Source: Hyalangium minutum (lineage in GTDB: Bacteria; Myxococcota; Myxococcia; Myxococcales; Myxococcaceae). From it: a DNA stretch of 64,000 nucleotides. The DNA is taken from positions 496,001-560,000 of the forward strand of contig NZ_JMCB01000006.1 of NCBI RefSeq assembly GCF_000737315.1, written 5' to 3'. Below the pieces are notes generated by a model. The model was not told the origin of the DNA and did no database searches. It saw nothing but the letters and a program-made list of their open reading frames with translations. Positions 21,982 through 37,482 of this stretch are shown one piece after another. The stretch's first letter is position 1. Each line of letters opens with the position of its first letter. The position numbers and the translations under genes were made by a program.

Positions 21982-23403
21982 CTACTGCGCGAGGTACTGG
22001 ATCGCCAGGCTCATACCCGCCTCGGAGCGCATGGAGCCGAAGTGGTTGGCGATGAAGCCCTTATTGAAGTAGCCGCTGGTGTCGTAGTCGTTGAGCGTCG
22101 TGAGCTTGTTCGTCACGCAGCCGTCCATGTCCATGCGCGAGGCCGCCTCGGAGACGTAGAAGTCCTGGTAGTTGGTCCCCTTCTCCTTATCCGTCATGGT
22201 GATGGTGTAGTACTTCACCACGTTACCCTCGCACTGGCCCGTCTTGCCGAAGGCGTAGTCGCCATCCGCGCACGGCGTGGCAAACAGATCGCGCGGCCCG
22301 TTCAGCGGCTTGTGGAAGTACGTCTGCACGTAGTTGGAGCGGCTGCCCATCTCGCACACGATGGTGCCCCGCATCGTCTTGTTGTTGCCGCACAGCGCGC
22401 TCGGCGGATCATACGTGGACACGCCGTGGTTGGCGCCCGAGCCCAGGATGACGTGGCTCACGTGCGGGAAGGGGTTGATGGCGTCCGCCTTGCCCTGGGC
22501 GTACTCCACGTACAGGCGGCGCAGCGCATCGCGCACCACCGTGACGCCCAGCGAGTGACCGACGAGGGCCACCTTGCGGTTCGGGTTGTTCTTCATCACC
22601 GCCTTGACCAGTCCCTGGAGGATCGGGGTGGACCAACCGTGGTCGATGTTGCCCGCGGTATTCTGCGTGGTGTTGTTGGCCGCCGGGTCGATGTTGGTGA
22701 CGATGTCCGTGCGGAAGTCCACGGCGATGACGCGGTAGCGCGCCGCGATCAGCTTCTCCGCCAACTGCAGACGCTCGGTGGAGTCCGCGGTGAACTGCAC
22801 GTTCTCAGTGGCCGTGGAGGGCGGGATGCCCGGCGGCAGGAGGAACTTCTCCCAGGTGTGCGGCCGCGTGGAGTTACCGTGCACCAGGATGACGATGGGC
22901 TTGGAGGTGTCCTCGTTCGGCTGGGTGTACTCCTTGGCCGCGCAGGGATAGCCGGGGATGTTGGCCTTGTCGCCGTCGATGAAGTTCTTGGCGGCGTTCG
23001 GCCCACCGAAGGCCGTAGCGCCCGTCCACTTGCCGTCGTTGTTGCCGTCCACGTACGGCGTGGTACCGGCCTTGTTGGCCTTGTCGTAGTAGAGGTTGTC
23101 GGTGAAGCAGCCCGGGTGGTTCGTCAGCGGGCGGTAGCGGCCGTCGTACTCCAGGTAATTCGCCTGGGTCTGGCCCGCCGTGGTGGTGATCTCCGCCATC
23201 TCCGGCGCGTCCGTGATGGGCCAGTTGGCGATGTCGATCCCGGCGGCCTGCACCTCGGCGATCTTCTGCTGGATGCGATCGCGACAGGCGACCACTTCCT
23301 CCGGAGTGGGGATGTCAGTTCCTCCCTGCTGGGACTCGCAGGCCCCCGCGAGCAATCCAAGGACCGCCACTGCGAAACGTCCACCCTTGCGAAGTGCCGC
23401 CAT
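21982..23403 (-). CDS. Lipoprotein alpha/beta-hydrolase (lipase-2/PhaZ7-like esterase)
   Basis: Lipobox LLAGAC after the start at 23403, oxyanion ILVHGNS, nucleophile GHSLG, late NHFG His, several Cys. Confidence 0.8.
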   Translation of the reverse strand: MAALRKGGRFAVAVLGLLAGACESQQGGTDIPTPEEVVACRDRIQQKIAEVQAAGIDIANWPITDAPEMAEITTTAGQTQANYLEYDGRYRPLTNHPGCFTDNLYYDKANKAGTTPYVDGNNDGKWTGATAFGGPNAAKNFIDGDKANIPGYPCAAKEYTQPNEDTSKPIVILVHGNSTRPHTWEKFLLPPGIPPSTATENVQFTADSTERLQLAEKLIAARYRVIAVDFRTDIVTNIDPAANNTTQNTAGNIDHGWSTPILQGLVKAVMKNNPNRKVALVGHSLGVTVVRDALRRLYVEYAQGKADAINPFPHVSHVILGSGANHGVSTYDPPSALCGNNKTMRGTIVCEMGSRSNYVQTYFHKPLNGPRDLFATPCADGDYAFGKTGQCEGNVVKYYTITMTDKEKGTNYQDFYVSEAASRMDMDGCVTNKLTTLNDYDTSGYFNKGFIANHFGSMRSEAGMSLAIQYLAQ

Positions 23404-23468
23404 CCGTTGCTCCTTTGCTGTTGTCCGCCACCGGCCAAGTACCAAGAAGACTCACGCGGGAGCAAATA

Positions 23469-23503
23469 AAGTTGAAAGGTGATTCACCTTTGCAGTGCGT
23501 CAT
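23469..23503 (+). promoter_or_regulatory. 35-nt composite operator element, copy A1
   Basis: AAGTTGAAAGGTGATTCACCTTTGCAGTGCGTCAT is 33/35 identical to the reverse complement of 26612-26646. It lies 66 nt upstream of the hydrolase operon. Confidence 0.75.
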
Positions 23504-23509
23504 ACGGGC

Positions 23510-23550
23510 GAAGTTGATTCCTGATTCAGCTTTGTCTCGCACTGCGTCAT
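23510..23550 (+). promoter_or_regulatory. Second, degenerate unit of the composite operator (copy A2)
   Basis: GAAGTTGATTCCTGATTCA followed by GCACTGCGTCAT (23539-23550). Confidence 0.6.
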
Positions 23551-23622
23551 GAATCCCTTCGTTGAGCTGGCCCTCGGCGCCGTGAGTAAATCCGGTTTGT
23601 CTGGCCTCGAAGGGAAGGGTGC

Positions 23623-24204
23623 ATGAAGCGCCACAAGCCGAAGCAGCACGTGTCCTTGACCGAGGTGGCCACGCTGCACAAGCGTGCCTCGCGGATGAAG
23701 CGGCAGGGCGAGGCGCATGAGTCGCTGGAGCTGCTGGACGAGGCGCTCGAGGCGTGCCCCGCGTACGTCCCCGCGCTGCTGTTGGCGGGCCGGCGGCTGC
23801 AGACGAGCGGCGCCCGTGAGCCCGCGGAGGCGCGCGCGGCGATGCACAAGGCGCGCAGGTACCTGCAACAGGCCGTGCTGGCGTCAGACCGCTCCGCCGC
23901 GTCGCTGGTGGAGCTGGGCTACTTCCTCTACGCGGTGGAGGGCTCGACGGAGGCGTCCGAGCGCTACCTGAACGCGGGCGTGGAGAAGGCCCTGAGCGTG
24001 CTGGAGGATGGCTGGAGCGGGCTCATCGACGTGCTGTATGCCCAGGGGCGGCTGGAGGAGGCGGCGAAGCTGGGACAGCGCGCGCAGCAGATGCTCCCCG
24101 GCTCGGTGCGCATCGCCACCGCGCTCACGCCCGTGCTGGCGGCGCTCTCCTCGCCCAAGCAGGAGCCCGAGCGGCCCCTGGGGCGCCGCAGATCATTCGA
24201 GTAG
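23623..24204 (+). CDS. Tetratricopeptide-repeat-like protein
   Basis: Helical TPR-like pattern (ELLDEALEACPAYVPALLLAG; SLVELGYFLY; LYAQGRLEEA). Its 3' end overlaps the convergent MFS gene by 12 nt. Confidence 0.7.
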   Translation: MKRHKPKQHVSLTEVATLHKRASRMKRQGEAHESLELLDEALEACPAYVPALLLAGRRLQTSGAREPAEARAAMHKARRYLQQAVLASDRSAASLVELGYFLYAVEGSTEASERYLNAGVEKALSVLEDGWSGLIDVLYAQGRLEEAAKLGQRAQQMLPGSVRIATALTPVLAALSSPKQEPERPLGRRRSFE

Positions 24205-25452
24205 CGCCTGGGCCTTCGGATCCTTCGCGCCCGCCGCGCTCTCCTCGTAGTCCAGGTCGCGGTGGAACGTCTCATCCAGGCGCGTGAGCGCCACGAGGGC
24301 CAGTCCAAAGCAGAGGGCACCGAAGGTCATCGCCGCGCTCGCGACGGAGATGTGGTTCTTCAGCTCATTGAACCCGAAGACGACGAGGGCCGCCGAGCCT
24401 CGCACGAAGTTGGGCACGGTCGTCGCCACGGTGCCGCGGATGTTGGTGCCGAACTGCTCGGCCGCCATGGTGACGAGCACCGCCCAGTAGCCCACCGTGA
24501 TTCCAATGCAGAAGCTCAGGACATAGATGAACGTGCTCGTGAGCCCCGGGACGAACCCGTACACCAGCACCAGGCAGAAGCCGACGATGAGGTTCGCGGC
24601 CACCGCCCGCTTGCGGCTCTTGAGCCACTGGCTGACCAGACCCGACAGCAAGTCTCCAATGGTCAGGCCGATCGAGCCGTAGAGGATGGCATTGCCGGCC
24701 GTCACCGTCCCCTGGACGTTCAGGCCCTTGGTCAGCTCGGGGGCAAACGTGAAGAGCACTCCGGTGGTGAAGTAGATGGGCACCCCCATCAGGATGCACC
24801 AGATGTACTTGGGGAGCCGTCCGCCCTGCAGCAGCAGCAGGGGATTGGCGCTGGAGGGGTGAGTCTTCTTGGCGAAGAGCTCGGACTCCGAGACCTTGAA
24901 GCGCGCGAACAGGAGCGCCAGCCCCATCACGCCACCGGTGAAATAGCCCGTCTTCCAGTGCAGGCGCTGGCCCACGAAGGACGCGGCGACGATGCCCAGC
25001 ATGCCCAGCGTCGCCACCACCGTGGTGCCCAGGCCGCGCTTGTCCTTGGGCAGGGACTCCGCCACCAGCGTGATGGCCGCGCCCAGCTCGCCCGCCAGGC
25101 CCACGCCGCCCAGGAAGCGGCACGCCGCGTAGCTCGTCACATCCCACGCGAAGGCATTGGCGAGGTTGGAGAACGAGTACAGGAGGATGGAGCCGAACAT
25201 CACCGACAGGCGGCCCTTCTTGTCGGCGATCACGCCCCAGATGAGGCCGCCGACCATCATCCCCACCATCTGGCAGTTGTAGATGAAGGCGCCCTTGTTG
25301 GTGATCTCCGCGTCGGAGAGCCCCAGCTCCCTGAGCGAGGAGACGCGCAGCACGCCAAACAGGGTGATGTCGAAGAGATCGACGAAGTAACCGAGGCCGG
25401 CAACGAGCACCGTCAGGGTCAGGACCGAGCGCAGATCACGCAGGAATTTCAT
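24193..25452 (-). CDS. MFS transporter
   Basis: About 12 TM segments; LGYFVDLFD, GVIADKKGRL and GVGLAGELGAAITLVAE. Confidence 0.9.
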   Translation of the reverse strand: MKFLRDLRSVLTLTVLVAGLGYFVDLFDITLFGVLRVSSLRELGLSDAEITNKGAFIYNCQMVGMMVGGLIWGVIADKKGRLSVMFGSILLYSFSNLANAFAWDVTSYAACRFLGGVGLAGELGAAITLVAESLPKDKRGLGTTVVATLGMLGIVAASFVGQRLHWKTGYFTGGVMGLALLFARFKVSESELFAKKTHPSSANPLLLLQGGRLPKYIWCILMGVPIYFTTGVLFTFAPELTKGLNVQGTVTAGNAILYGSIGLTIGDLLSGLVSQWLKSRKRAVAANLIVGFCLVLVYGFVPGLTSTFIYVLSFCIGITVGYWAVLVTMAAEQFGTNIRGTVATTVPNFVRGSAALVVFGFNELKNHISVASAAMTFGALCFGLALVALTRLDETFHRDLDYEESAAGAKDPKAQALLE

Positions 25453-25513
25453 GGGGCGTTTCGCGGGGACTTCAGCAGCGGGTTGATATCATCGGCCTGA
25501 GGGTTCGTCCTAA

Positions 25514-26551
25514 TCAGGGCACCAGGACCAGCTTGCCCACGGTGGTGCCCGACTCGATGGCGCGGTGGGCCTCGGCCACCTGATCGAGCGGGAACCGCGT
25601 CACCGGCGGCGCGGTCAGCTTGCCCTCCTCCAACCAGGCAAGCAGGCGCTGCATGGCCTCGGAGAGGATGCCGCGCTGCTCGAACAGATAGGAGAGGTTG
25701 AAGGCGAGCACGCTGGTGTTGTCGTTGGTGAGCGTGAGCGGGTTGTAGCGGGGAGTGCGCAGCCAGTCCCAGGCGAGCTTCAGCCAGTTCGGCCGGCCGC
25801 CCTGGCGCGGCATCATCGAGTGGAAGCCATAGATGACGAGCTTCCCGGGCGAGGCCAGGTGCGCGTAGCTCTGCCGGAGGGTGGCGACACCGTTGGCATC
25901 GAGCACGACGTCATAGCCTCGGGGTGAGGCCGCCTCCGCCGCCTTCCACAGGTCCTCGCGGGACTTGTCGATGACGACGTCCGCACCCATGGCGCGCGCC
26001 GTCTCCACCTTGTGTGAGCTGCCGACGACGCCCACCACCCGGCACCCCGCGAGCCTCCCGAGCTGCACGAGCGCGCTTCCCACGCCACCGGCCGCCGAGT
26101 GCACGAGGATGTTCGCGCCCGGGTGTGGGTGCGCCAGCTCGAAGAGCGCGAAGTACGCGGTGAGGAACACGGCGGGGAACCCCGCGGCCTGCGCCGCATC
26201 GAGCCGCGACGGCAGCCGGAAGAGCTGATGCCGGGGCACCGCGACGTGGGTGGAGTAGCCACCGAACAACGTCACCCCGAACACCTTCTCGCCCTGCTGG
26301 AGATCCGAGACGCCCTCTCCCACCGCGGCGACGGTGCCCGCGAACTCGAAGCCCGGCGTGATGGGCCAGCCCACGAACTCCTGGGCGGAGGCATAGAGGC
26401 CCATGCGGATGACACAGTCCGCGTAGTTGACGCCAATCGCCTCGGTGGCGACCACCACCTCTCCGGCCTTCGGAATCGGAATGGCCAGCGGCTCGCGGGT
26501 GAGCCGCTCGTATCCCCCTGGCCGATGGATGACCACCTGACGTGCTGACAT
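25514..26551 (-). CDS. Medium-chain dehydrogenase/reductase (VAT-1/quinone oxidoreductase-like)
   Basis: AIGVNYAD, TPGFEFAG, nucleotide-binding HSAAGGVG and TVGKLVL. Start MSARQ at 26551. Confidence 0.9.
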   Translation of the reverse strand: MSARQVVIHRPGGYERLTREPLAIPIPKAGEVVVATEAIGVNYADCVIRMGLYASAQEFVGWPITPGFEFAGTVAAVGEGVSDLQQGEKVFGVTLFGGYSTHVAVPRHQLFRLPSRLDAAQAAGFPAVFLTAYFALFELAHPHPGANILVHSAAGGVGSALVQLGRLAGCRVVGVVGSSHKVETARAMGADVVIDKSREDLWKAAEAASPRGYDVVLDANGVATLRQSYAHLASPGKLVIYGFHSMMPRQGGRPNWLKLAWDWLRTPRYNPLTLTNDNTSVLAFNLSYLFEQRGILSEAMQRLLAWLEEGKLTAPPVTRFPLDQVAEAHRAIESGTTVGKLVLVP

Positions 26552-26570
26552 GCGGCGCGCATTATGGCTG

Positions 26571-26603
26571 ATGACGCATTGCGAAACTGAATCAACCTTC
26601 ACC
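26571..26603 (-). promoter_or_regulatory. Second unit of the composite operator (copy B2)
   Basis: The minus strand reads GGTGAAGGTTGATTCAGTTTC then GCAATGCGTCAT. Confidence 0.65.
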
Positions 26604-26611
26604 TTTTCTCC

Positions 26612-26646
26612 ATGACGCACTGCATAGGTGAATCACCCTTCAACTT
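26612..26646 (-). promoter_or_regulatory. 35-nt composite operator element, copy B1
   Basis: The minus strand reads AAGTTGAAGGGTGATTCACCTATGCAGTGCGTCAT. It lies in the divergent intergenic region between the MDR and lipase genes. Confidence 0.75.
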
Positions 26647-26748
26647 GCGTCCATTTGCCTGACTGTGTTCGCGGGCGAAGCCCGTACACTGCGCGGTACG
26701 CCTGCTCACTGCGCGAGCAGGCGATCCCCCAATTCAAGGAGAACCAAG

Positions 26749-27771
26749 ATGCGTCTGCGCTCTTCCCTGTCGCTGATGGGTGCGCTGTGCCTGGGCTCGT
26801 TGTCCGCTGGATGTGGTGAGGGCCTGGAGCCGGCCGAGGTTGTGACCGAGGCTCCCACGACGGAGCTGGCTACACAGGAGCAGGCAGCTTCGACGTCGGG
26901 CTTCACCTCGCACTTCCGCACGTGGCTGTCGGCCAATGGCTATGACTCGTACAACCTGGTGCGCGCGGATCTCGTGGGCGGCAGCTACGGCGGCAAGGCC
27001 AGCGGCACGGACACGGTGGTGAACCAGCCGGTCATCTTCATCCACGGCAACTCGGACAAGGCCATCGGCACGGGCACGGCGGGCCAGTCAGGCTGGAACG
27101 CCTCCATCGATTACTTCCTGGCCAACGGCTACAAGACGAGCGAGCTGTATGCGACGACGTGGGGCCCGGCGGACGCCTCGATGTCGGCGTACCAGTACCA
27201 CTCGAAGACGTACGTGATGAAGGTCCGCAAGCTCATCGAGGCGGTGCTGGCGTACACGGGCGCGGCCAAGGTGGACATCATCTCGCACTCCATGGGCGTG
27301 ACGCTGGCACGCAAGGCCATCCTCGGCGGCACCGCGACCGACTCGCTGGAGGGCGGCCAGTACAACATCGGCCCGTCGCTCACCGGGAAGGTGGACACGT
27401 TCGTCGGCATCGCGGGCGGCAACCGGGGCCTGGTGAGCTGCTACCAGACGGGAGGCTCCACGCCCACCTGCGGCGCCACCAACGGTCTGTATCCGGGCTA
27501 TTGGAACGGCCTCGGCGTCTCGGGCCGCTCGGCGTACCTGGAGAACCTGATGTCCACCAGCAAGTACGAGGGCGCCTACCGCTACAGCATCTGGTCCACG
27601 GACGATGAGATCATCGGCTACAACAACGTCGTCTACTACGACTACACCTCGCGCATCCCCGGGCAGACGGGCGAGAAGGTGTACTCCGGTTATCCGTACG
27701 GCCACTTCGGCGTGAAGGATCAGACGGCGGCCGTGCAGTACAGCATGGTGAAGAGGAACGTCATTCCGTAA
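26749..27771 (+). CDS. Secreted/lipoprotein lipase, Lipase_2 family
   Basis: Lipobox-like LSAGC, GGSYGGK, PVIFIHGNSD, ELYATTWG, nucleophile SHSMG and GHFG. SD GGAG upstream. Confidence 0.88.
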   Translation: MRLRSSLSLMGALCLGSLSAGCGEGLEPAEVVTEAPTTELATQEQAASTSGFTSHFRTWLSANGYDSYNLVRADLVGGSYGGKASGTDTVVNQPVIFIHGNSDKAIGTGTAGQSGWNASIDYFLANGYKTSELYATTWGPADASMSAYQYHSKTYVMKVRKLIEAVLAYTGAAKVDIISHSMGVTLARKAILGGTATDSLEGGQYNIGPSLTGKVDTFVGIAGGNRGLVSCYQTGGSTPTCGATNGLYPGYWNGLGVSGRSAYLENLMSTSKYEGAYRYSIWSTDDEIIGYNNVVYYDYTSRIPGQTGEKVYSGYPYGHFGVKDQTAAVQYSMVKRNVIP

Positions 27772-27779
27772 CACGCTCC

Positions 27780-27814
27780 CGCGGAGGGGGTGCCACGATG
27801 GCTCCCCTTCCGCG
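27780..27814. terminator. GC-rich hairpin between convergent hydrolase genes
   Basis: CGCGGAGGGGGTGCC-acgat-GGCTCCCCTTCCGCG; the arms pair at about 13/15 positions. Confidence 0.5.
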
Positions 27815-27834
27815 AGGCACCCCCTGCGCCCGCC

Positions 27835-28905
27835 TCAAGGCGTGTGGGTCGTCGGCGGGACTTGTTGCTGCGGCTCCCCTCCCCCACTGGCCGGGAGCTT
27901 CTTCAAGAACGCGCTCACCGCGTCGTTGTACTCCTGAGGGCAATCGAGCTGCACCGAGTGGCCGCAGCGCTCCAACCCCACGAGCTCGGACCCTTTGATG
28001 TTGGCGTGGCCGTACTCCATGACCTCCCGGGCCCGGCCACCGTGCATGAACGGGTTGGGGATGAGCCGGTCATCCTCGCCGAAGACGATGATCGCTGGCG
28101 CCTGGATGGACTTGAGGCTGTCGCGCACGAAGTCGTCGTGGGCCAGCCCGTCCACCGTCCTCACGTTGGCGTAGGCGTACGCGTCGAAGTCCGGCGTGGC
28201 CACCACGCGCACGCGCTCCTCGATGAGCCACTCCAGCTCCGGGCGCCAGCGGGCGAAGTTGGACTGCCGCACGCTGCCCCAGATGCCGTACTCGGGCGAG
28301 GACTTGATGAGCGTGGTGCTGAAGGCGCGCGTGAGCCACGCCTTCTCCTTCCAGGAGAACTTCTCGAAGCCGGCGGGCGAGGTGAGCACCAGCGCGCCCG
28401 GCTCCTCCGGGTAGCGGATGGCGTAGGAGAGCGCCGTCTGCCCGCCCATGGAGTGCCCCACCAGCACGGGCTTCTGGATGCCGAGCGTCTGCACCACCTC
28501 GCGCACCGCGTCCGCCATGGCCTCCATGGTGTACGGGAACGTGCCCGGCTTGTCGGACTTGCCGTAGCCCGGCAAGTCCACGGCGATGACGCGGTAGCCC
28601 TGGGCGGCGAAGGCATCCAGCTGGTAGCGCCAGAACTTCAGGTACGAGCCCAGCCCGTGGATGAAGACCAGCGTGCGCTGGCCCTCGGGGTTGAGCTCCA
28701 CGTAGGCCACCTCAGGGACGGTGGCCACGCCGTACGTCTCCGCCGTCTTCGGCAGCGGGATGCGCTTGAGCGGCCACGCCTGCCCCTGGGGCGAGGTGTA
28801 GGGGAACTCCTGGAAGGGCAGCGGCGGCTGGTCCCGGTACGAGCGGACACAACCCGAGGCGAGCACGGCGCAGAGAATCAGGACCGAGGCGCGAGGAGTC
28901 GTCAT
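27835..28905 (-). CDS. Lipoprotein alpha/beta-hydrolase
   Basis: Lipobox LASGC, FIHGLGS, DLPGYGKS, nucleophile GHSMGG, GEDD acid and CGHSVQ His. Start at 28905. Confidence 0.9.
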   Translation of the reverse strand: MTTPRASVLILCAVLASGCVRSYRDQPPLPFQEFPYTSPQGQAWPLKRIPLPKTAETYGVATVPEVAYVELNPEGQRTLVFIHGLGSYLKFWRYQLDAFAAQGYRVIAVDLPGYGKSDKPGTFPYTMEAMADAVREVVQTLGIQKPVLVGHSMGGQTALSYAIRYPEEPGALVLTSPAGFEKFSWKEKAWLTRAFSTTLIKSSPEYGIWGSVRQSNFARWRPELEWLIEERVRVVATPDFDAYAYANVRTVDGLAHDDFVRDSLKSIQAPAIIVFGEDDRLIPNPFMHGGRAREVMEYGHANIKGSELVGLERCGHSVQLDCPQEYNDAVSAFLKKLPASGGGEPQQQVPPTTHTP

Positions 28906-28907
28906 GA

Positions 28908-30566
28908 TCAGAACGCGTACCAGGTGAAGGTGGTGAAGGCCGCGAAGGGGTTGGAGGTGACGCGCTCCGCCCCGTCGTAGAAGCTGCCCTTGAACATGTA
29001 GCCGGTGTGCAGGCCCACGGTCATGAGGTAGCGGATGTTGTACTTCAGCTCCGCGTTCACCTCGGCGCCGATGAAGCGCCCGCGGCGCACGTCCGGATTC
29101 CAGCGTATCGGCGACGCATTGGCCGAGGCCATGGCCGCCCCCAGCTTCAGGTTCAGCTTGTTGGGGATGAGGTCCATCGAGCCCGCGGCGATGGCGGCGC
29201 GCAGGCCGTAGCCCTGGTTGGAGATGTCCGTCACCGCGCCCGTGTAGTTGTTGGCCGTGCTGGTGAAGGGGAACAGCAGGAGCGTCTTGTGGTTGAACCA
29301 CACCGCGCCTGGCAGGCCGTACATGTTGAGGGTGAAGGCGCCCTTGTACTTTCCGTCGGACAGGTCGTCGTCGCCCGTGGTGTAGATGCCCTCGAGCGAC
29401 ACCACGTCATTGGGAGTACGGCCCCAGTTGTAGAGCACCTCCGCGTTGGCGGAGAGGCCGCTGATGCTCACCTCGGGGTTGAGGGCGGTGTCCTCGTTGC
29501 TGCTGGTGTACTTGCCCCCGTTGTACATGACGAAGCCGGAGGCCCCGAGGCGGCCGGTGCGGAAGTCGATGTTGTGGTGGAAGTTCGCGCCCACCCAGAA
29601 CACCGTGCCCGAGGGCCGGTCGATGTTGAAGCGCGGGGTGCCCGTGAAGCTGCCCAGGCCCGTGGACGAGGGACCGCTCTTCACCAGACCCTCGAAGGCG
29701 AAGGCGTCGCCCTTGGTGTCGTCGCGCAGCGCCCACGCGGAGACGCCCACGCTGGTGCCGGGCTGGATCGGGTACGAGTAGTCCCCGGTGATGAGCCAGA
29801 TGTACTTCAGCCGCGGGTCATCCTCGAGCGCCTTGTCCGCCTGCGCGGTGCCCAGGGGCAGCAGGCTCAGCTTGGCGTTGCCCTTGTAGCTGCTGAAGAT
29901 GGACAGGCCCGTCGCGTCGCTGCCCAGGAAGGTCAGCTTGTAGCCCGTGCGGATGATGTCGTTGAGGGGCGTGCGCGTCGGGTCGAAGATGGCGTCGTAG
30001 ACGGGCTGAGCGCCGATGAGCAGCGTCAGCTTGGTCGGGTCGCGGAACGGGTAGAACGCGACGTTGACGTTCTTCGTCTGGATGTTGACCTGATCCGCGT
30101 TGAAGCCACCGCCCTCGTTGGGCTGGATGGTGTTGGCGGCGCGGCCCCAGAGGAAGTCCACCTCGAACTGGGCGCGGAAGCTGGCCAGCCCGTCCACGAA
30201 CCACGGGCTGTACTCGATGACCGGAATCCAGCGCTGCTCGATGTAGTACGCCTTCAGGTCCTCCACGCGCACCGCGCTGCCGGCCAGGTTGCCGATGGGC
30301 CCGAGCGCCACGCCCTTCAGGCCGCTCGGGTCGCCGATCTGGTTGGTGAACGTGGCGCGCGAGAAGAAGTAGTTGATGAGCACGAACTCGCGAGGCTCTG
30401 CGTCCTTCTCGCGGTCCTTCTCATCCTGCCACTTCGGATAGTACGCGCCGGGGACCGTCGTCGGGCTCGCGCTCGCGGAGAGCGAGAACCCGGCCGCTGC
30501 CAGGGCGAGCGCCGTCGCGCCACCCCGCAGGGCCCTGCCTGCTTCAGCCTTCGACCACCACGTCAT
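28908..30566 (-). CDS. Putative outer-membrane beta-barrel protein
   Basis: Signal peptide, aromatic-rich amphipathic strands and a BAM-type C-terminus FTTFTWYAF. Confidence 0.7.
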   Translation of the reverse strand: MTWWSKAEAGRALRGGATALALAAAGFSLSASASPTTVPGAYYPKWQDEKDREKDAEPREFVLINYFFSRATFTNQIGDPSGLKGVALGPIGNLAGSAVRVEDLKAYYIEQRWIPVIEYSPWFVDGLASFRAQFEVDFLWGRAANTIQPNEGGGFNADQVNIQTKNVNVAFYPFRDPTKLTLLIGAQPVYDAIFDPTRTPLNDIIRTGYKLTFLGSDATGLSIFSSYKGNAKLSLLPLGTAQADKALEDDPRLKYIWLITGDYSYPIQPGTSVGVSAWALRDDTKGDAFAFEGLVKSGPSSTGLGSFTGTPRFNIDRPSGTVFWVGANFHHNIDFRTGRLGASGFVMYNGGKYTSSNEDTALNPEVSISGLSANAEVLYNWGRTPNDVVSLEGIYTTGDDDLSDGKYKGAFTLNMYGLPGAVWFNHKTLLLFPFTSTANNYTGAVTDISNQGYGLRAAIAAGSMDLIPNKLNLKLGAAMASANASPIRWNPDVRRGRFIGAEVNAELKYNIRYLMTVGLHTGYMFKGSFYDGAERVTSNPFAAFTTFTWYAF

Positions 30567-30617
30567 AAACCCCTCGGGAATGAATGGAAGACAGGGCCGC
30601 GCGGGTGCGCGGGTGCA

Positions 30618-31778
30618 CTACTGCGCCGCAGAGACCGCGTAGACCTGACGCGCGTTGCCCGTGAAGTCCGCGTTGTTGAGCTTCACCGTCCGGGAGCCCA
30701 CCACGCCCGCCGCGCAGTTGGCGCCCACCGCCTGGTTCTCGAAGAAGATCTCCAGCGTCAGCGTCTTGCCGTCACCGGACAGCTTGCCGCGCCCCGCCTG
30801 CTTGAAGCTCGGGTACGTCACGCTGATGTCGAAGCACGCGCCGTTCGACTTCACGTTCTCGATGAGGACGGCGGTGGAGGTGAAGCTCAGCGGAGTGCCC
30901 GAGACCACCGTGTGATCGCACGTGCCGGTGTTGCCCACATTGGGAGCATCCCGCAGGGTGCCCAGGTTGCTGGTCACCGCCAGGTTGCCACCCGACACGG
31001 TCATCTCCGACTTCGTGTAGCACTGCGTGGCGCTGCCGTAGTTGGTGTCCTCGTTGAAGCCGTTCGGGTGGCTGGGGATGTTGGCGCCCTCCATCACCAG
31101 CTTCTTGCCCTCCAGGAGCGCCTTGATCTTCTCCGCCGTGTCGAACGACGGCAGCGCCGTCAGCACCGTGTAGACCTGCTTCGAGTTGCCCGTGAAGTCG
31201 ACGTTGTTGACCTTGACGCCCGTCGAGCCTACCGCGCCCGCCGCGCAGGTGGCGCCAACTGCCTGGTTCTCGAAGTAGAGCTCCAGCGTCAGCGTGTTGC
31301 CCCCGTCGCTCAGCTTGCCGCGGCCCACCTGCTTGAAGCTCGGGTACGTCACGCTGATGTCGAAACACTCGCCGTCACCCTGCACGTTCTCGATAAGGAC
31401 GGCGGTGGAGGTGAAGCTCAGCGGGGTGCCCGCAGCCACCGGCTCACACTCGCCCGTGGCGCCCACGGTGGCGGCGTTGCGCAGGGTGCCCAGGGTGCTG
31501 GTGACGGCAAAGTTGCCGCCCGAGACGTTCATGGAGACCTTCTCGTAGCACTGCGAGGCGCTGCCGTAGTTGGTGTCCTCGTTGAGGCCGTTCGGGTGGC
31601 TGGGGACGTTGACGCCCTCCATCACCAGCGTCTTGCCCTCGAGGTGCGCCTGGATCTTGGCCGGCGTGTCGAACTTCTGGGTGGGCTGGGGGTTGGGCTC
31701 CGGCTCCTTGTCATCGCCACCGCAGCCCACGAGGCTCAGCGCACACACCATGACCGCGGAAAGCAGCTTCCTCTTCAT
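30618..31778 (-). CDS. Lipoprotein with two tandem ~176-aa beta-rich repeats
   Basis: Lipobox LVGC, a PEPNPQP linker and two highly similar domains (FDT..KI..LEGK.LVMEG.N.PSHPNG.NEDTNYGSA.QCY...). Confidence 0.85.
   Translation of the reverse strand: MKRKLLSAVMVCALSLVGCGGDDKEPEPNPQPTQKFDTPAKIQAHLEGKTLVMEGVNVPSHPNGLNEDTNYGSASQCYEKVSMNVSGGNFAVTSTLGTLRNAATVGATGECEPVAAGTPLSFTSTAVLIENVQGDGECFDISVTYPSFKQVGRGKLSDGGNTLTLELYFENQAVGATCAAGAVGSTGVKVNNVDFTGNSKQVYTVLTALPSFDTAEKIKALLEGKKLVMEGANIPSHPNGFNEDTNYGSATQCYTKSEMTVSGGNLAVTSNLGTLRDAPNVGNTGTCDHTVVSGTPLSFTSTAVLIENVKSNGACFDISVTYPSFKQAGRGKLSGDGKTLTLEIFFENQAVGANCAAGVVGSRTVKLNNADFTGNARQVYAVSAAQ
30621..31673 (-). repeat. Intragenic tandem duplication with a 528-nt period
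   Basis: FDT codons at 31673 and 31145 are 528 nt apart; shared blocks include LSFTSTAVLIENV, CFDISVTYPSFKQ and FENQAVGA.CAAG. Confidence 0.9.
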
Positions 31779-31877
31779 ACAGACACTCCTCGCTTCGTCG
31801 GTGGGACGGCCGGGGATGACATGACGCAGGAGGCTCCCCGGCGCGAGCCCCCCACGAAACTCTGCGAACTGCTCGAG

Positions 31878-33434
31878 CTACGACGGGCCGCGCGCGTCTG
31901 CCGCGATGGCGGCCTCCCTCAGCTCCCGCTTGAGGATCTTCCCCGCCGGCGACACCGGCAGGCGCTCCATCAGCTCCACCTTCTTGGGCACCTTGAAGCG
32001 CGCCACCCGCTCGCGCAGGTGCGTCAGCAGCTCCTCCGAGGTGGCGGCAGTGCCGGGCTTGAGCACCACGAACGCACGGCCGACCTCGCCCCACTTCGCA
32101 TCCGGCACGCCAATCACCGCGCACTGCTGCACGGCGGGGTGCTCGTAGAGCACGGACTCCAGCTCCAACGGGTACACGTTCTCTCCGCCGGAGATGAACA
32201 TGTCCTTCTTGCGTCCGGCGATGGTGAAGAAGCCGTCCGCGTCGCGGCGCGCCAGGTCTCCCGTGTGGAACCAGCCCTGAGCGTCGATGCTCTCCTTCGT
32301 GGCGGCCTCGTCGTTGAAGTAGCCGGAGCACATGGACGGCCCCTTGAGGACGAGCTCGCCCACCCCGCCCACCGGCACCTCGCGGCCGTCGTCATCCACC
32401 AGCCGTGCGTCGACGAAGTAGTTGGGCCGGCCAATGGAGCCCGCCTTGGAGATGGCGAACTCCGGGCCCATGCTGAAGAGGCCCGGGCCGAACTCCGTCA
32501 TCCCGAAGCCCTGCTTGAAGGGCACCGAGTGCACGGCCTGCCACGCCTGGATGAGCGGCACGGGCATGGGCGCGCCACCGCTCGTCATGAAGCGCACGGT
32601 GGAGAAGTTCGTGGCGCGGAAGCTCGGCGAGTCGTGGAGCTGCTGGTACTGCGTGGGCACCGCGAAGAACAGCGTCACCTTCTCGCTCTGGATGAGCTTC
32701 AGCAGCTCCTCGGGGTCCCACCGGCGCATGATGACGACAGTGCCGCCCACGGTGAGCAGCGGCACCGAGTACACCAGCAGCCCGCCCGTGTGGAACATGG
32801 GCGTGTGGGTGATGGTGACGTCGCCGGGCCGCACCTCGTGGACCAGCGTGTTGAGCGTGTTCCACGCCACCATGCGGTAGGAGACCATCGCGCCCTTGGA
32901 GCGCCCCGTGGTGCCGCCGGTGAAGAGCAGGCAGAGGATGTCCTCCTGGCTCACCTGCTCGTTCGTCACCGGCGCGGTGGGCCGGTGCAGCAGCGTCTCC
33001 GCGTACGGCATGCTCCGGGGCAGGCTCTTCGTCTCCAGGTGCACCAGCCGCAGGCTGTCGCCGAAGCGCTCCTGCACCTGGCCCACGTTGTCGCGGAAGT
33101 CGTCACCGAAGAAGAGCACGCGCGGCGTGGTGTCCTTCACCGACTCCGCCAGCTCCTGGGCATGCAGCCGCCAGTTGTAGGGGACGAAGATGGCGCCGAT
33201 CTTCCCGCAGGCGAAGAGCAGGTCCAGGTACTCCACGCCGTTGTGGGCCACCAGGCCCACCCGGTCCCCGCGCTTCACGCCCGCCACGTCGCGCAGCCAC
33301 CCGCCCAGCGCCTCGGCGCGGGCATTGAGCGCACGGTAGGTGAAGCGGCCGGCCTCGCCCTTGGCCACGTCCACCACCGCCATCTGCTCTGGCCAGTACA
33401 ACGCTCCCCGGCCCATCCAGTCGCCGATGAACAT
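31878..33434 (-). CDS. Acyl-CoA synthetase (FadD-like), paralog of 15916-17436
   Basis: FTGGTTGRSKG, GFGMTE, HTGDLA, GRKKDMFISGGENVYP and SPAGKILK. Start MFIGDW at 33434. Confidence 0.93.
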   Translation of the reverse strand: MFIGDWMGRGALYWPEQMAVVDVAKGEAGRFTYRALNARAEALGGWLRDVAGVKRGDRVGLVAHNGVEYLDLLFACGKIGAIFVPYNWRLHAQELAESVKDTTPRVLFFGDDFRDNVGQVQERFGDSLRLVHLETKSLPRSMPYAETLLHRPTAPVTNEQVSQEDILCLLFTGGTTGRSKGAMVSYRMVAWNTLNTLVHEVRPGDVTITHTPMFHTGGLLVYSVPLLTVGGTVVIMRRWDPEELLKLIQSEKVTLFFAVPTQYQQLHDSPSFRATNFSTVRFMTSGGAPMPVPLIQAWQAVHSVPFKQGFGMTEFGPGLFSMGPEFAISKAGSIGRPNYFVDARLVDDDGREVPVGGVGELVLKGPSMCSGYFNDEAATKESIDAQGWFHTGDLARRDADGFFTIAGRKKDMFISGGENVYPLELESVLYEHPAVQQCAVIGVPDAKWGEVGRAFVVLKPGTAATSEELLTHLRERVARFKVPKKVELMERLPVSPAGKILKRELREAAIAADARGPS

Positions 33435-33477
33435 GCGCGCTCCTCCCCAGATCGGTGCGACAGGCGCCGTGCGGCTC

Positions 33478-34473
33478 TCAGGCCGTCCAGCGGTAGAGAG
33501 CGGAGGCCATGGAGAGGCCGCCGCCGCTGGCACAGAAGGCCACCAGGTCCCCGCGCCTCACCTTGCCCTGCTCGACCGCGTCGTCGAGCGTCATTGGGAT
33601 GCAGGCCGAGCCCGTGTAACCCCACTTGTCCATGGTGTAGTGCGCCTTCTCCATCGGCTGGCCGAGCACCTTCATGGTGGCCTCGATGGTGCGCAGGTTC
33701 AGCTGGGTGAAGACGAACTGGTTCACGTCCTTCAGCTCCAGCCCGGCGCGCTTGAGCAGGATGTCCAGCAGCTGCGGCCAGCGCTCGGTGTTGAAGGTGG
33801 AGGGGAACTTGCGGACGAACTGCACCGCGGGCTTGCCGTTGGTCAGGGCAATGTTCTCGGCGGTGGCTGGGCGGAAGGTGCCGCCGGTGTAGACGCCGAG
33901 CGCGTCGTGGTACTCGCCGTTGGCCAGCAGGCGGGCGCCCATGAAGCCGGGCTTGTCGCTCGCGCCCAGCACCACCGCGCCCGCGCCGTCCGCGAAGAGC
34001 GTGCAGGTCTTCTTGTCCTTCCAGTTGATGTAGCGCGACATCCCGTACGCGCCCAGCACGAGGATGCGCTTGTAGCTCTCGTCCGCGGCGATGGTCTTGC
34101 TGGCCACGTCCAGCGCCGTCACCCACCCGGCGCAGGCGCAGTTGAGGTCGTACGTGCCCGCGTTCACCGCACCCAGCTTGGCCTGCACCACCGACGAGGT
34201 GGCCGGGCTGAGGTAGTCCGGCGTATCCGTGGCGACGATGATGAGGTCCAGTTCCTCCGGCTTGGTGCCCGCGCGCTGGAGCGCCTGGCGCGCTGCGGCG
34301 ACGCACAGGTCCGAGGTGGCCTGATCATCCGCCATGATGTGGCGCTCACGGATGCCCACGTTCTGCACGAGCCAGTCGCCCACGGGCTCGCCGACGATGC
34401 GGTCCATCTCGGCGTTGGTGATGACCTTCTCGGGAACGTAGCGCCCGGTGGAGAGGATTTGCGCGTATCTCAT
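33478..34473 (-). CDS. KAS III (FabH)-like protein with a non-canonical active site
   Basis: FabH-type sequence (STGRYVPE, GIRERH, LFADGAGA). Catalytic Cys114 (NCACAG) is kept, but the HQAN position reads TQLN and the GNT position reads GYT. Confidence 0.9.
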   Translation of the reverse strand: MRYAQILSTGRYVPEKVITNAEMDRIVGEPVGDWLVQNVGIRERHIMADDQATSDLCVAAARQALQRAGTKPEELDLIIVATDTPDYLSPATSSVVQAKLGAVNAGTYDLNCACAGWVTALDVASKTIAADESYKRILVLGAYGMSRYINWKDKKTCTLFADGAGAVVLGASDKPGFMGARLLANGEYHDALGVYTGGTFRPATAENIALTNGKPAVQFVRKFPSTFNTERWPQLLDILLKRAGLELKDVNQFVFTQLNLRTIEATMKVLGQPMEKAHYTMDKWGYTGSACIPMTLDDAVEQGKVRRGDLVAFCASGGGLSMASALYRWTA

Positions 34474-35180
34474 GATGCAGTGCTCCGGACGGTGTTGCGC
34501 GCGGTCTTGGTGCCGCGCTTCGTGGAAGAAGAAGAGGACTTCGCGCTGCTCTTGCCCGGGCGGGACGGGGGGCGCGGATCCAGGCCGTGGCTGATCAGGT
34601 CCATGGCGGCGTCCAGCACGCGCTCCAGGCCGGGATCCTCCTCCCAGATGACCCAGCGCATCCCGAGGAAGTCACCGATGCCCATCAGGCAGTAGGCGAG
34701 CGCCTCTGGGTCCATGCGGCGGATCTCCCCGTTCTCCATGGCCTGGGTGAGGCCGCGCACGTAGCCCCGGGCGAAGCGGTCGTAGTAGCGCCGGTAGCAC
34801 TCCTCGTCGACGAACTCGGCCTGGCGGACCACGCGGTAGAGGTTGGGGTGCTCGCGGGCAAACTCGAAGAAGGCGCGCAGGCCCTCGCGCTCCACCTCGA
34901 TGCGGTCGGTGACGCCCTTCACGGACTCGGCGATGAGGCGGCGGAGGCGCTCGCCCAGCTCGTCCACGACTTCCACGAAGATGGACTGCTTGTCCGGGAA
35001 GTAAACGTAGAAGGTGCCGAGCGCGACGCCGCTCTTTCGGGTAATATCCGCGATGGACGCGCGCTCGTAGCCCTTCTCCCCGAAGATGACCTCGGCCGCC
35101 CGCAGCAGCTTCTGGCGCGTCTTCTGGCCTCGGGGCGTCACGGGGAGCATCCGGTCGGATGAAGTTGAAGGGCGATTCAT
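34470..35180 (-). CDS. TetR/AcrR-family transcriptional regulator
   Basis: TRQKLLRAAEVIFGEKGYERASIADITRKSGVALGTFYVYFPDK HTH. ATGA overlap with the KAS III gene. Confidence 0.93.
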   Translation of the reverse strand: MNRPSTSSDRMLPVTPRGQKTRQKLLRAAEVIFGEKGYERASIADITRKSGVALGTFYVYFPDKQSIFVEVVDELGERLRRLIAESVKGVTDRIEVEREGLRAFFEFAREHPNLYRVVRQAEFVDEECYRRYYDRFARGYVRGLTQAMENGEIRRMDPEALAYCLMGIGDFLGMRWVIWEEDPGLERVLDAAMDLISHGLDPRPPSRPGKSSAKSSSSSTKRGTKTARNTVRSTAS

Positions 35181-35187
35181 GTTTCAT
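35161..35187 (+). promoter_or_regulatory. 27-nt operator-like element overlapping the TetR start codon
   Basis: GAAGTTGAAGGGCGATTCATGTTTCAT is 25/27 identical to 36287-36313. Confidence 0.75.
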
Positions 35188-35190
35188 GTA

Positions 35191-35220
35191 CGGGTAGCAC
35201 CCTGCCGCGGGGCTTGTCAA
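35191..35220 (-). promoter_or_regulatory. Candidate sigma70-type promoter for tetR
   Basis: Minus strand TTGACA (35215-35220), 18-nt spacer, TACCCG (35191-35196), directly upstream of the operator and ATG. Confidence 0.45.
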
Positions 35221-35325
35221 AACCTCCGTGGCTGGAATCCATGGCCCCCTGCGTCATAGGCGGTGGGTGGTTTCCTCTTCTCACGGGGACATAGGCTCAG
35301 CGCCCCTCGCCTCCACTATCCCCCC

Positions 35326-36246
35326 ATGCTCCAGACCGTTCTGCTTGTCCTGCTCACGGCCAGTCCCTCGGGCTCCGATGCCCTCCGCGGCTCTCTGCAG
35401 CAGCGCATCATCCAGGTGAAGGGAGCCTCCGTCGCCGTCGTCTACCAAGACCTCGGAGACCTCAAGGACAGCGTCCTCATCGAGGCCGACCGATCCTTCC
35501 ACGCCGCCAGCACCATGAAGGTCCCTGTCATGGTCGAGTTCTTCCGGCAGGTGGATGCCGGAACGCTCTCGCTCGACCAGCCCATCCCCCTCGTCAACCA
35601 GTTCCGCTCCATTGTCGATGGCTCGCCCTACGCGCTGGATCCCAAGGAAGATGAGGACGCCGCCCTTTATGAACAGCTCGGCAAGTCCGTGCCCGCGCGC
35701 GAGCTCATCCAGCGGATGATCACCCGCTCGAGCAACCTCGCCACCAACTCCGTCATCGCGCTTGTGGACGCCAAGCGCGCTACGCAGACCCTGCGCACCC
35801 TCGGCGCACAGCAGATGACCGTGCTGCGCGGCGTCGAGGACGGCAAGGCCTACCAACAGGGCCTCAACAACACCGCCACCGCCAAGGACCTCGCCACGCT
35901 GCTCGCCGCCATCGAGCGGGGCAAGGCCGCCTCCGACCGCTCCACCGAGGCCATGCGCTCCATCCTCCTTGCCCAGGAGCTGAACGAAGAAATCCCCGCC
36001 GGCCTGCCCCCAAGCACCCGCGTGGCCCACAAGACGGGGCAGATCTCCGGCGTCCTCCATGACGCGGCCATCATCTACCCCTCCGGCCGCGCACCCTACG
36101 TCCTCGTCGTCCTCACCAGCGGCATCCCTGACGAGAAGGTGGCCCGCTCCCTCATCGTGGACATCTCCCGGGCCGTCTACGCTCACGCCACCCGGAGCGC
36201 CGCCCCGGCCACCCCGAAACCGTCCGCCCCCACTCCCAAGCCCTGA
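35326..36246 (+). CDS. Serine hydrolase, class A beta-lactamase-like
   Basis: SxxK (ASTMK), SxN (SSN) and KTG motifs, plus a signal peptide. Confidence 0.88.
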   Translation: MLQTVLLVLLTASPSGSDALRGSLQQRIIQVKGASVAVVYQDLGDLKDSVLIEADRSFHAASTMKVPVMVEFFRQVDAGTLSLDQPIPLVNQFRSIVDGSPYALDPKEDEDAALYEQLGKSVPARELIQRMITRSSNLATNSVIALVDAKRATQTLRTLGAQQMTVLRGVEDGKAYQQGLNNTATAKDLATLLAAIERGKAASDRSTEAMRSILLAQELNEEIPAGLPPSTRVAHKTGQISGVLHDAAIIYPSGRAPYVLVVLTSGIPDEKVARSLIVDISRAVYAHATRSAAPATPKPSAPTPKP

Positions 36247-36286
36247 GCCCGCAGCGGCTCATGTGGGAGAGCAACCCTGCTCATGG

Positions 36287-36313
36287 GAAGTTGAAGGTCG
36301 ATTCAGGTTTCAT
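36287..36313 (+). promoter_or_regulatory. 27-nt operator-like element upstream of the SDR gene
   Basis: GAAGTTGAAGGTCGATTCAGGTTTCAT, about 100 nt before the SDR start. Confidence 0.75.
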
Positions 36314-36416
36314 ACGCCTCCCCCCTTTCCAGCCCCCCGCTGTTGGGCGTACCCTCCGCGCCGCTTTTCACGGCGGCCGGGCTTTCGCGCCGCCGCACTC
36401 ACCAGGAGAGATGCAC

Positions 36417-37163: not shown

Positions 37164-37482
37164 GGCCGTCTGGGGACGGGGCCATCCCTCGTGCGGCTCC
37201 CTCTGGAGCAGCCGGGCAGGCTGGCCCTCGCCTTCCTATCGGTCGATCGGCCGTCTCATGAACCGAGAGACTTCGCCGTCCTCCCGAGAACAAACAATTT
37301 TCTCAGATGTCTAAGGATTGACGGGCTTTTTCGACCCACGCCAGTGGTGCAGGTTGCCGGGACAATCCTGAGTTCCTAGTTTATTCGGGAAGGCGCGAGA
37401 AGAGGTGCCGGTGTCATGAGAGCTGCGCAGACACATCCGGCGTCACAAGGCAGGACGCCTCCGACACGGCATGCCCTGCAAT

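Follow-up and report, generated by a model that had tools for sequence, protein, structure and literature searches.

Six copies of a conserved element in a lipid gene cluster of Hyalangium minutum are probable operators of a FadR(Sa)-like TetR regulator

We analyzed a stretch of 64,000 nucleotides of the genome of Hyalangium minutum (NCBI RefSeq assembly GCF_000737315.1, contig NZ_JMCB01000006.1, positions 496,001 to 560,000), hereafter the window, which harbors a cluster of lipid-related genes, a gene encoding a TetR-family regulator (tetR), and six copies of a DNA motif. A preliminary description of the region, made from the sequence alone, had proposed that this motif is the operator of the TetR. 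Gene families were assigned with Pfam and NCBIfam (Table 1). Six genes are found in a run on the minus strand, from 35180 down to 27835: tetR, a KAS III gene, a fatty-acid--CoA ligase gene (hereafter ligase), the genes of two conserved proteins called U386 and U552, and an alpha/beta hydrolase gene. The successive gaps or overlaps in this run are -4, about -56, 99, 51, and 2 nt, and the true start of the ligase gene is probably downstream of 33533. Next to tetR, on the opposite strand, there is a class-A beta-lactamase-family gene followed by the gene of a FabG-like short-chain dehydrogenase (SDR). Beyond the other end of the run, two lipase genes, Lip2 and LipL, are divergent from a Zn-dehydrogenase-family gene (ADH) and from the gene of a TPR protein, respectively. 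All six copies of the motif are within 13 kb of lipid genes.

The core of the motif, G(T/G)TGA-N5-GATTCA (GKTGA-N5-GATTCA), has exactly six matches in the window, at 23471(+), 23513(+), 26588(-), 26629(-), 35164(+), and 36290(+), as had been reported. Dinucleotide-preserving shuffles of the window give an expectation of 0.03 matches, and none of 100 shuffles reached six. The longer pairings drawn in the preliminary description are also exact, with 33 identical positions out of 35 between 23469-23503 and the reverse complement of 26612-26646, and 25 out of 27 between 35161-35187 and 36287-36313. Once the six copies are aligned by orientation, they turn out to be longer than this core and asymmetric. 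The full element has 25-26 bp and reads (G/A)AAGTTGAA-N4-GATTCA-N2-TTT(C/G), with AAGT conserved at its 5' end and TTT(C/G) at its 3' end. This A/T-rich element stands out in a window of 68% G+C. We built a 25-bp weight matrix from the six copies, a check that had been proposed, and scanned the 64 kb with it. The six copies scored 37-43 bits and the next unrelated position 12.9 bits; neither the core pattern nor the matrix revealed a seventh copy in the window.

Copies A and B (named as in Table 1) form a tandem pair 42 bp apart, and copies D and C a tandem pair 41 bp apart. The box GCAnTGCGTCAT, which lies behind these four copies, occurs in four perfect copies in the 64 kb, is found nowhere else in the window, and is conserved in Hyalangium-like relatives. 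It could be a promoter core for the lipase genes or the site of a second factor. Copy A holds a perfect 17-bp palindrome, AAAGGTGAtTCACCTTT. Among 92 distinct sites, self-complementarity is highest at motif positions 12.5, 16.0, and 19.5 in each of the three classes of sites, the outer two centres being mirrored about the middle one. The anatomy of the element is that of two overlapping TGAA-N6-TTCA dyads, 7 bp apart, which have a central TGATTCA in common and together make a 21-bp palindrome, TGAA-N4-GAtTC-N4-TTCA. The orientation of the motif is the same relative to SDR, ADH, and TPR, and the opposite relative to tetR, LipL, and Lip2.

Table 1. Genes and sequence elements of the lipid cluster, with positions in the window.
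Feature	Position	Strand	Remarks
LipL, lipase-like alpha/beta hydrolase	21982..23403	-	divergent from TPR across copies A and B
Operator copy A (AAAGTTGAAAGGTGATTCACCTTTG)	23468..23492	+	64 bp from LipL ATG, 130 bp from TPR ATG
Operator copy B	23510..23534	+	42 bp downstream of A; 88 bp from TPR ATG
Box GCAnTGCGTCAT	23492..23503(+), 23539-23550(+), 26571-26582(-), 26612-26623(-)		behind copies A-D, not E or F
TPR protein	23623..24204	+	copies A and B point towards it
MFS transporter	24193..25452	-	downstream of ADH
ADH, Zn-dehydrogenase/quinone-oxidoreductase family	25514..26551	-	without Shine-Dalgarno; CATAAT 10 nt upstream of ATG
Operator copy C	26582..26606	-	30 bp upstream of ADH ATG
Operator copy D	26623..26647	-	41 bp from C; 101 bp from Lip2 ATG
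Lip2, class-2 lipase	26749..27771	+	divergent from ADH across copies C and D
Alpha/beta hydrolase with lipoprotein-like signal	27835..28905	-	last gene of the tetR operon
U552, conserved 552-aa protein	28908..30566	-	tetR operon
U386, conserved 386-aa lipoprotein-like protein	30618..31778	-	tetR operon
Long-chain fatty-acid--CoA ligase-type AMP-binding enzyme	31878..33533	-	tetR operon
KAS III (FabH-type)	33478..34473	-	overlaps tetR stop codon by 4 nt
TetR-family regulator, 236 aa, presumed repressor	34470..35180	-	ATG at 35178-35180
Operator copy E	35161..35186	+	over tetR start; faces the beta-lactamase-family gene
TTGACA hexamer, candidate -35 of the tetR promoter	35215..35220	-	sequence reading
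Class-A beta-lactamase-family gene	35263..36246	+	between copies E and F
Operator copy F	36287..36312	+	105 bp upstream of SDR ATG
SDR, FabG-like short-chain dehydrogenase	36417..37163	+	most conserved target outside the tetR operon

We assessed the link between the motif and the TetR in two directions. In the forward direction, we collected 80 genome loci whose sole selection criterion was a gene for a relative of this TetR. They represent Hyalangium, Myxococcus, Corallococcus, Pyxidicoccus, Archangium, and Cystobacter, as well as metagenome-assembled genomes (MAGs) of Polyangiales, Chloroflexota, and Actinomycetota, with identities ranging from 89% down to 49%. The motif overlaps the start codon of the TetR gene in 69 of the 80 loci, including loci of Chloroflexota, Actinomycetota, and Polyangiales at 49-60% identity (for example GAAGTTGACACCTGATTCACCTTTC in Caldilineaceae), and this comparison supports a shared operator of the TetR, as proposed in the preliminary description. 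In the reverse direction, we scanned metagenome contigs for AAGTTGAM-N4-GATTCA-N2-TTTC without reference to any protein, which gave at least 120 contigs. Among the matches listed, 77 of the 89 contigs with a GC of at least 0.5 encode a divergent TetR homologue (33-92% identity) within 200 bp of the motif, and in 51 of these 77 the start codon is inside the motif. Such a TetR is present in only 1 of the 31 listed contigs with a GC below 0.5, where the matches are probably due to chance in A/T-rich DNA. Judging from these comparisons, motif and TetR are associated whichever of the two is taken as the starting point, in at least four phyla. This is what one would expect from an autoregulatory operator, and neither an unlinked factor nor a host-specific promoter element would give such a pattern.

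Among the 12 exceptions with a GC of at least 0.5, we inspected eight. Two have a more distant TetR starting with MNRMSTS and one has a TetR on the same strand. In the others, a KAS III-like gene, an alpha/beta hydrolase gene, or genes of TonB-dependent receptors adjoin the motif. One exception contig (L151) has an SDR gene behind the motif. The TonB-dependent receptor genes (Plug and beta-barrel domains) are next to the motif at L153:1349 and L169:4792, which hints at outer-membrane uptake systems being part of the regulon in other lineages.

The copy at the start of tetR deserves a closer look. Read on the other strand, copy E consists of tetR codons 1-7 (ATG AAT CGC CCT TCA ACT TCA) and the 6 nt upstream of the ATG. 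The hexamer at 35220-35215 on the tetR strand is part of a TTGACA-N18-TACCCG pair, with the ATG 10 nt beyond TACCCG, and the earlier statement that one copy covers the TetR start codon just below a TTGACA is thus accurate. There is no Shine-Dalgarno sequence before the tetR ATG, unlike before those of LipL, TPR, Lip2, SDR, and U386. The reading frame between the ATG or GTG inside the motif and the conserved TPRGQ(K/R)TR is open in every orthologue, with linkers of different lengths, which argues that translation starts inside the operator. The N terminus of the TetR reads MN(R/Q)xSTS in all orthologues. One could explain this by conservation of the peptide only. However, among 46 distinct sequences, codon 2 is AAT in 45, codon 5 is TCA in 46, and codon 6 is of the type NNT in 46, whereas the G+C content at third codon positions (GC3) in the rest of the gene is 0.93. 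These A/T-ending codons led us to reject conservation of the coding sequence only, and indicate that the start of tetR is conserved at the DNA level. The tetR mRNA is probably leaderless or nearly so, its first ~20 nt being the operator. The ADH gene may resemble tetR in this respect, since the lack of a Shine-Dalgarno sequence and the CATAAT 10 nt before its ATG suggest a leaderless or very short-leader mRNA. The CATAAT before the ADH ATG (26552-26575, minus strand) is also kept in a relative (L003, upstream of 18010).

The regulator has a TetR-type helix-turn-helix domain (PF00440, E 1.1e-13, residues 25-71) and weak matches to TetR_C_41 and TetR_C_33. A search of the PDB with this protein matched 146 TetR structures, of which the closest by far is FadR(Sa) (6EL2/6EN8, E 2.8e-34; next structure 3e-16). 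The match to 6EL2 covers residues 12-198 of the query and 5-190 of the chain, with an identity of 34% overall and 30% in the ligand domain. FadR(Sa) is the protein Saci_1107 of the archaeon Sulfolobus acidocaldarius, with structures solved with lauroyl-CoA (6EL2) and with DNA (6EN8), and it uses only four sites to repress a cluster of lipase/esterase and beta-oxidation genes that spans 30 kb (PMC6449355). Long-chain acyl-coenzyme A (acyl-CoA) releases it from DNA via Arg73 and Arg86, both validated by mutation; the contacts with the CoA phosphates are R73, K77, R86, and R132, and M101 is the switch (PMC6449355). The DNA-contact residues G48, Y51, and Y53 of FadR(Sa) are conserved here as G55 (the essential glycine), Y58, and Y60, and the CoA-contact residues R73 and R86 as R80 and R93. 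In the acyl tunnel (F68, F97, F111, and F126 in FadR(Sa)), F97 is conserved as F104, and L75, V118, and Y133 keep the tunnel hydrophobic. The homology over the whole protein places the TetR as a full-length FadR(Sa)-like protein, i.e., a bacterial relative of the archaeal acyl-CoA sensor. The family is small, as only 165 clusters at 50% identity reach E <= 1e-30 among 1.84 billion representatives, and the window encodes a single TetR of this kind. Many of the closest relatives have about 400-420 aa and match the query twice, i.e., they are tandem-fused double TetR proteins.

The operators of the two regulators can also be compared. That of FadR(Sa) is a 16-bp dyad, T(T/C)GA-N8-TCAA, e.g., TCGACTCAAAAATCAA and TTGACAGAGGGATCAA, which is bound by one dimer or by a QacR-like pair of dimers, according to an asymmetric extension of the operator (PMC6449355). 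Our sites have the same dyad spacing in the same register, TTGA-N8-TCA (TTGAAGGGTGATTCAc here and TTGACACCTGATTCAc in Chloroflexota), with the last A not conserved. FadR(Sa) has one site immediately past the point where its own transcription starts and others inside genes, and most of its sites are more than 130 bp from promoters (PMC6449355). The element described here lies over the start codon of the regulator, whose mRNA is probably leaderless or nearly so, and is found inside genes in some genomes. Both systems have few sites in one lipid cluster with esterases or lipases, acyl-CoA synthetases, a 3-ketoacyl reductase, and a Zn-dehydrogenase-family gene. The differences concern the host, which is bacterial here (Myxococcota, with relatives in Chloroflexota, Actinomycetota, and Polyangiales) instead of archaeal, and the operator, which is longer, far more conserved (~19 fixed positions), and placed within the first seven codons of the repressor. 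The gene sets differ as well, with KAS III, ligase, ketoreductase, and lipases here instead of beta-oxidation enzymes. The full-length homology and the common dyad spacing reinforce the idea, voiced in the preliminary description, of a FadR-like regulator responding to acyl-CoA, a ligand that we still infer.

To identify the other targets, we read the synteny across about 55 myxobacterial loci. The gene order starts with S8 protease, U177, and SDR (opposite strand), followed by a site, a second site that overlies the start of tetR, and then tetR, KAS III, ligase, U386, U552, and the hydrolase. Then come Lip2 (opposite strand), at least one site, and ADH, in some loci together with MFS, and lastly TPR (opposite strand), another site, and LipL. 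A site is found 80-120 bp upstream of each SDR orthologue, including those that other genes separate from tetR by 2-8 kb. The two genes have a single site in common in Archangium and Cystobacter, where they are ~100 bp apart. Some relatives of Hyalangium (L004, L005, L047) lack the beta-lactamase-family gene and have two sites 140-180 bp apart between SDR and tetR. This gene is found between the two sites in the window and in four relatives (L001-L003, L013), as a lineage-specific insertion. Since a site is kept at every SDR orthologue and is shared where the two genes are adjacent, the comparison indicates that SDR is a core target and that the operator was duplicated as the SDR/tetR pair was pulled apart.

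The situation is different on the side of the lipases. The Lip2/ADH and LipL/TPR sites score strongly only in the lineage of the window (Hyalangium-like L001-L005, L037, L047). We found no site next to Lip2 in Archangium, and in a Myxococcaceae MAG (L057) there is a site between SDR and LipL. In Myxococcus and Pyxidicoccus, a near-perfect palindromic version of the motif is inside the ADH gene rather than between Lip2 and ADH, at codons 19-27 (peptide ENLNQVSPG, with A/T-ending codons). This intragenic palindrome is at L007:19060-19084 and in the same place in L006, L010, L014, L021, and others; the window and Citreicoccus have another peptide at this position of ADH and no site there. Hence, control of the two hydrolase loci is not a conserved property. 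Furthermore, because the intergenic regions are divergent, LipL cannot be told from TPR as a target, nor Lip2 from ADH-MFS, and ADH-MFS and TPR are equally candidates. The statement that all copies are upstream of lipid-related genes is therefore incomplete, as the divergent regions also face TPR, the ADH/MFS operon, and the class-A beta-lactamase-family gene. Of the proposed control by TetR of its own operon, SDR, and both hydrolase loci, the first two are supported by the comparison, and the copies at the hydrolase loci are lineage-specific and ambiguous in their targets. In Archangium, a weaker copy (21-33 bits; L041:16807, L048:16680, L050:20048) is upstream of the gene of a 351-aa alpha/beta hydrolase that is not in the cluster of the window.

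Taken together, we consider it likely that the six elements are operators of the neighbouring FadR(Sa)-like TetR, which would be released by acyl-CoA and thereby induce a set of lipase and fatty-acid-activating genes. The composite operators would be occupied by a single TetR dimer or, in the manner of QacR and FadR(Sa), by two that face each other across the helix. As copy E is over the start and just downstream of the promoter-like TTGACA-N18-TACCCG, a repressor bound there would block initiation of the six-gene tetR operon. It would also repress SDR and, in this lineage, the divergent Lip2/ADH-MFS and LipL/TPR regions, from operators 30-130 bp upstream that occur, in these two regions, as tandem pairs about four helical turns apart. 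Several of the lipases have lipoprotein-like signal peptides (read by eye), and secreted lipases would release fatty acids, which the co-transcribed ligase would convert to acyl-CoA. Long-chain acyl-CoA would then enter the C-terminal pocket of the repressor, release it from DNA, and induce the whole set. KAS III enzymes that accept acyl-CoA primers are known, and a set with KAS III, ligase, and ketoreductase but no beta-oxidation genes suggests that exogenous fatty acids are salvaged or elongated and not degraded. In this scheme, we infer the physical binding, repression rather than activation, the stoichiometry, the acyl-CoA ligand, and the role in fatty-acid salvage.

Several observations weigh against this interpretation. 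The motif is asymmetric, with AAGT on one side only, which a plain palindromic TetR operator would not explain, and its orientation is fixed, always towards SDR, ADH, or TPR and away from tetR. Copies A-D carry the additional conserved box. A number of FadR(Sa) contacts are changed in the TetR (Y47 to L54, L49 to T56, and N37, K77, and M101 to alanine); R132 is a glycine, with an arginine adjoining its position, and the helix-3 residue F52 is V59. Given these unconserved residues, the specificity, the cooperativity, and the response to the ligand may differ from those of FadR(Sa). The gene set has neither acyl-CoA dehydrogenase nor enoyl-CoA hydratase and hence, unlike that of FadR(Sa), does not make up a beta-oxidation regulon. 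As described above, Archangium lacks the lipase-side sites, and Myxococcus has them within a gene. A scan of 23000-37500 found no sigma-70 consensus promoter. Finally, the support for this interpretation comes from the comparison of sequences.

The TetR might bind the motif in a different capacity and activate its targets or regulate them in both ways, at the very least where sites lie ~70-130 bp upstream of SDR, Lip2, LipL, and TPR. FasR of mycobacteria is a TetR-type activator, and the similarity of our protein to the NCBIfam models of FasR and ScbR is weak and sub-threshold. Most of the sites other than that of tetR are too far upstream of start codons to be placed relative to promoters, which, together with the fixed orientation towards SDR, ADH, and TPR and the remoteness of most FadR(Sa) sites from promoters, is in line with activation. 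However, a site over the tetR start codon has the classic geometry of a repressor, and the closest relative that has been characterised, a repressor, is released by acyl-CoA; both mutation-validated arginines of that protein are conserved. It might also be that the ligand is a free fatty acid, acyl carrier protein-bound acyl (acyl-ACP), a product of lipid hydrolysis, or the product of KAS III. The lack of conservation of the ligand residues K77, M101, and R132 fits another ligand, whereas the co-transcription of an acyl-CoA ligase with the regulator across phyla argues for acyl-CoA. We regard an activator or another ligand as unlikely.

It is much less probable still that the motif is bound by another factor encoded elsewhere, or is a promoter element of the genes it points at, with the TetR as a mere neighbour. 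In the latter case, the 5' AGTTGAA (AGTTGACA in Chloroflexota) could be the -35. The motif is indeed directional, its 5' arm is TTGACA in Chloroflexota, with TATAAT 18 nt downstream at one locus (L059), and CATAAT follows GATTCA after 21 nt upstream of ADH. Yet no acceptable -10 recurs with constant spacing behind the sites of the SDR or TetR class, and the scan of 23000-37500 gave no sigma-70 promoter. Neither a host-specific sigma factor nor an unlinked factor would account for the two-way link with the TetR in at least four phyla, and FadR(Sa), a homologue of this TetR, has an operator with a matching dyad. The operator may nevertheless overlap with a -35, which would be compatible with repression. 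The spacings of sigma-54 (GG-N10-GC) and extracytoplasmic function (ECF; AAC-N16/17-CGTC) promoters misfit the motif and the box GCAnTGCGTCAT in our reading of the sequence. We give the least credit to a non-regulatory origin of the copies, be it as a dispersed repeat (similar to repetitive extragenic palindromes (REP) or miniature inverted-repeat transposable elements (MITE), or as inverted ends of a 3.1-kb mobile segment), as hairpins or terminators, or by conservation of the peptide MNRPSTS. In its favor, copies A and D flank 3.1 kb in inverted orientation, the minus strand of copy A was flagged as resembling a terminator, and the tetR copy is translated. Against this, the same DNA motif recurs in non-coding positions, and third positions with four-fold degeneracy are fixed as A or T, in a gene whose GC3 is 0.93. 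We rejected a mobile element with A/B and C/D as inverted ends because its interior consists of TPR, MFS, and ADH, without a transposase, and the sites are syntenic in other genera. Terminators or hairpins were rejected because only copy A is terminator-like, no gene ends there, and copies E and F make poor hairpins.

For comparison with other known systems, the FadR proteins of Bacillus subtilis (FadR/YsiA, 3WHB/1VI0) and Thermus thermophilus (3ANG) have the TetR fold, repress fatty-acid genes, are released by acyl-CoA, and autoregulate via palindromic boxes. However, the similarity of our TetR to them is weak and mostly N-terminal (E 5e-11 to 1e-7; 6e-11 for 3WHB and 1e-7 for 3ANG), and it scores 47 bits with the NCBIfam FadR model NF053878, for a cut-off of 200, i.e., it is not a FadR of the Bacillus/Thermus type. 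The regulons of those proteins consist of beta-oxidation genes, unlike here, and their ligand enters from the dimer interface, unlike in FadR(Sa) (PMC6449355). The two overlapping dyads recall QacR/IR1 of Staphylococcus aureus and, from their symmetry, might accommodate two dimers, one on either face of the helix. QacR, however, is a regulator of multidrug efflux with no close sequence similarity to our TetR. Within myxobacteria, AibR of Myxococcus xanthus is a TetR-type sensor of isovaleryl-CoA that controls an adjacent operon (PMC5389471). It resembles our TetR in having an adjacent operon and an acyl-CoA ligand, which for our TetR is the proposed one, but it belongs to another operon (aib genes, mvaS) and is missing from the 60 best PDB matches of our protein.

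In the open-access literature searched, we saw neither this regulon described for myxobacteria nor any bacterial relative of FadR(Sa). The class of mechanism, a TetR repressor with palindromic operators and a metabolite as inducer, is textbook, and the regulon is a well-supported and fairly ordinary local one. What sets it apart is the fusion of the operator with the coding start of the repressor, its conservation across phyla, and the duplication of the operator upon gene insertion. It provides a concrete regulon (lipases, acyl-CoA ligase, KAS III, ketoreductase, and the conserved proteins U386 and U552) for an uncharacterised lipid cluster conserved across Myxococcaceae and Archangiaceae, and may bear on the use of prey lipids by predatory myxobacteria. 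The paper on FadR(Sa) reported that BLAST gave no bacterial functional homologues and argued that its acyl-CoA sensing is independent of bacterial FadRs (PMC6449355). The presence of full-length bacterial relatives with a matching operator bears on this argument. The strongly conserved 25-bp operator and the small repressor could also serve as a portable acyl-CoA-responsive switch. A broader scenario is possible, which we put forward tentatively. This would be the bacterial parent family of the archaeal FadR(Sa), and the regulator and its operator would have moved as a module between Myxococcota, Chloroflexota, Actinomycetota, and Sulfolobales, keeping the dyad. The operator would be hard-wired in the first seven codons (MN-x-x-STS) of a leaderless mRNA and would have been duplicated upon insertion of genes, including the beta-lactamase-family gene, between tetR and SDR. 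The module would couple the secreted lipases of predatory myxobacteria to a KAS III/acyl-CoA ligase/ketoreductase route that feeds fatty acids of the prey into their own lipid synthesis.

Some of the neighbouring genes call for additional remarks. U552 and U386 have no Pfam match even at E <= 5, and no PDB match with single sequences or with a 10-sequence profile. U386 carries a lipoprotein-type signal. An open reading frame of 1567 aa at 29007-33710(+) was discarded as a spurious high-GC artefact, since it has no Pfam or family match and is antisense to the AMP-binding, U386, and U552 genes. The beta-lactamase-family gene matches the Pfam family Beta-lactamase2 (5.8e-53) and scores 110 bits with the NCBIfam class A model, below the cut-off of 200. 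Copy E points at this gene, which may come under lipid-responsive control. Finally, a relative of U552 with 708 aa and 32% identity is encoded directly behind a copy of the motif in a metagenome contig (L162) and contains GISQGG, a GxSxG-like sequence.

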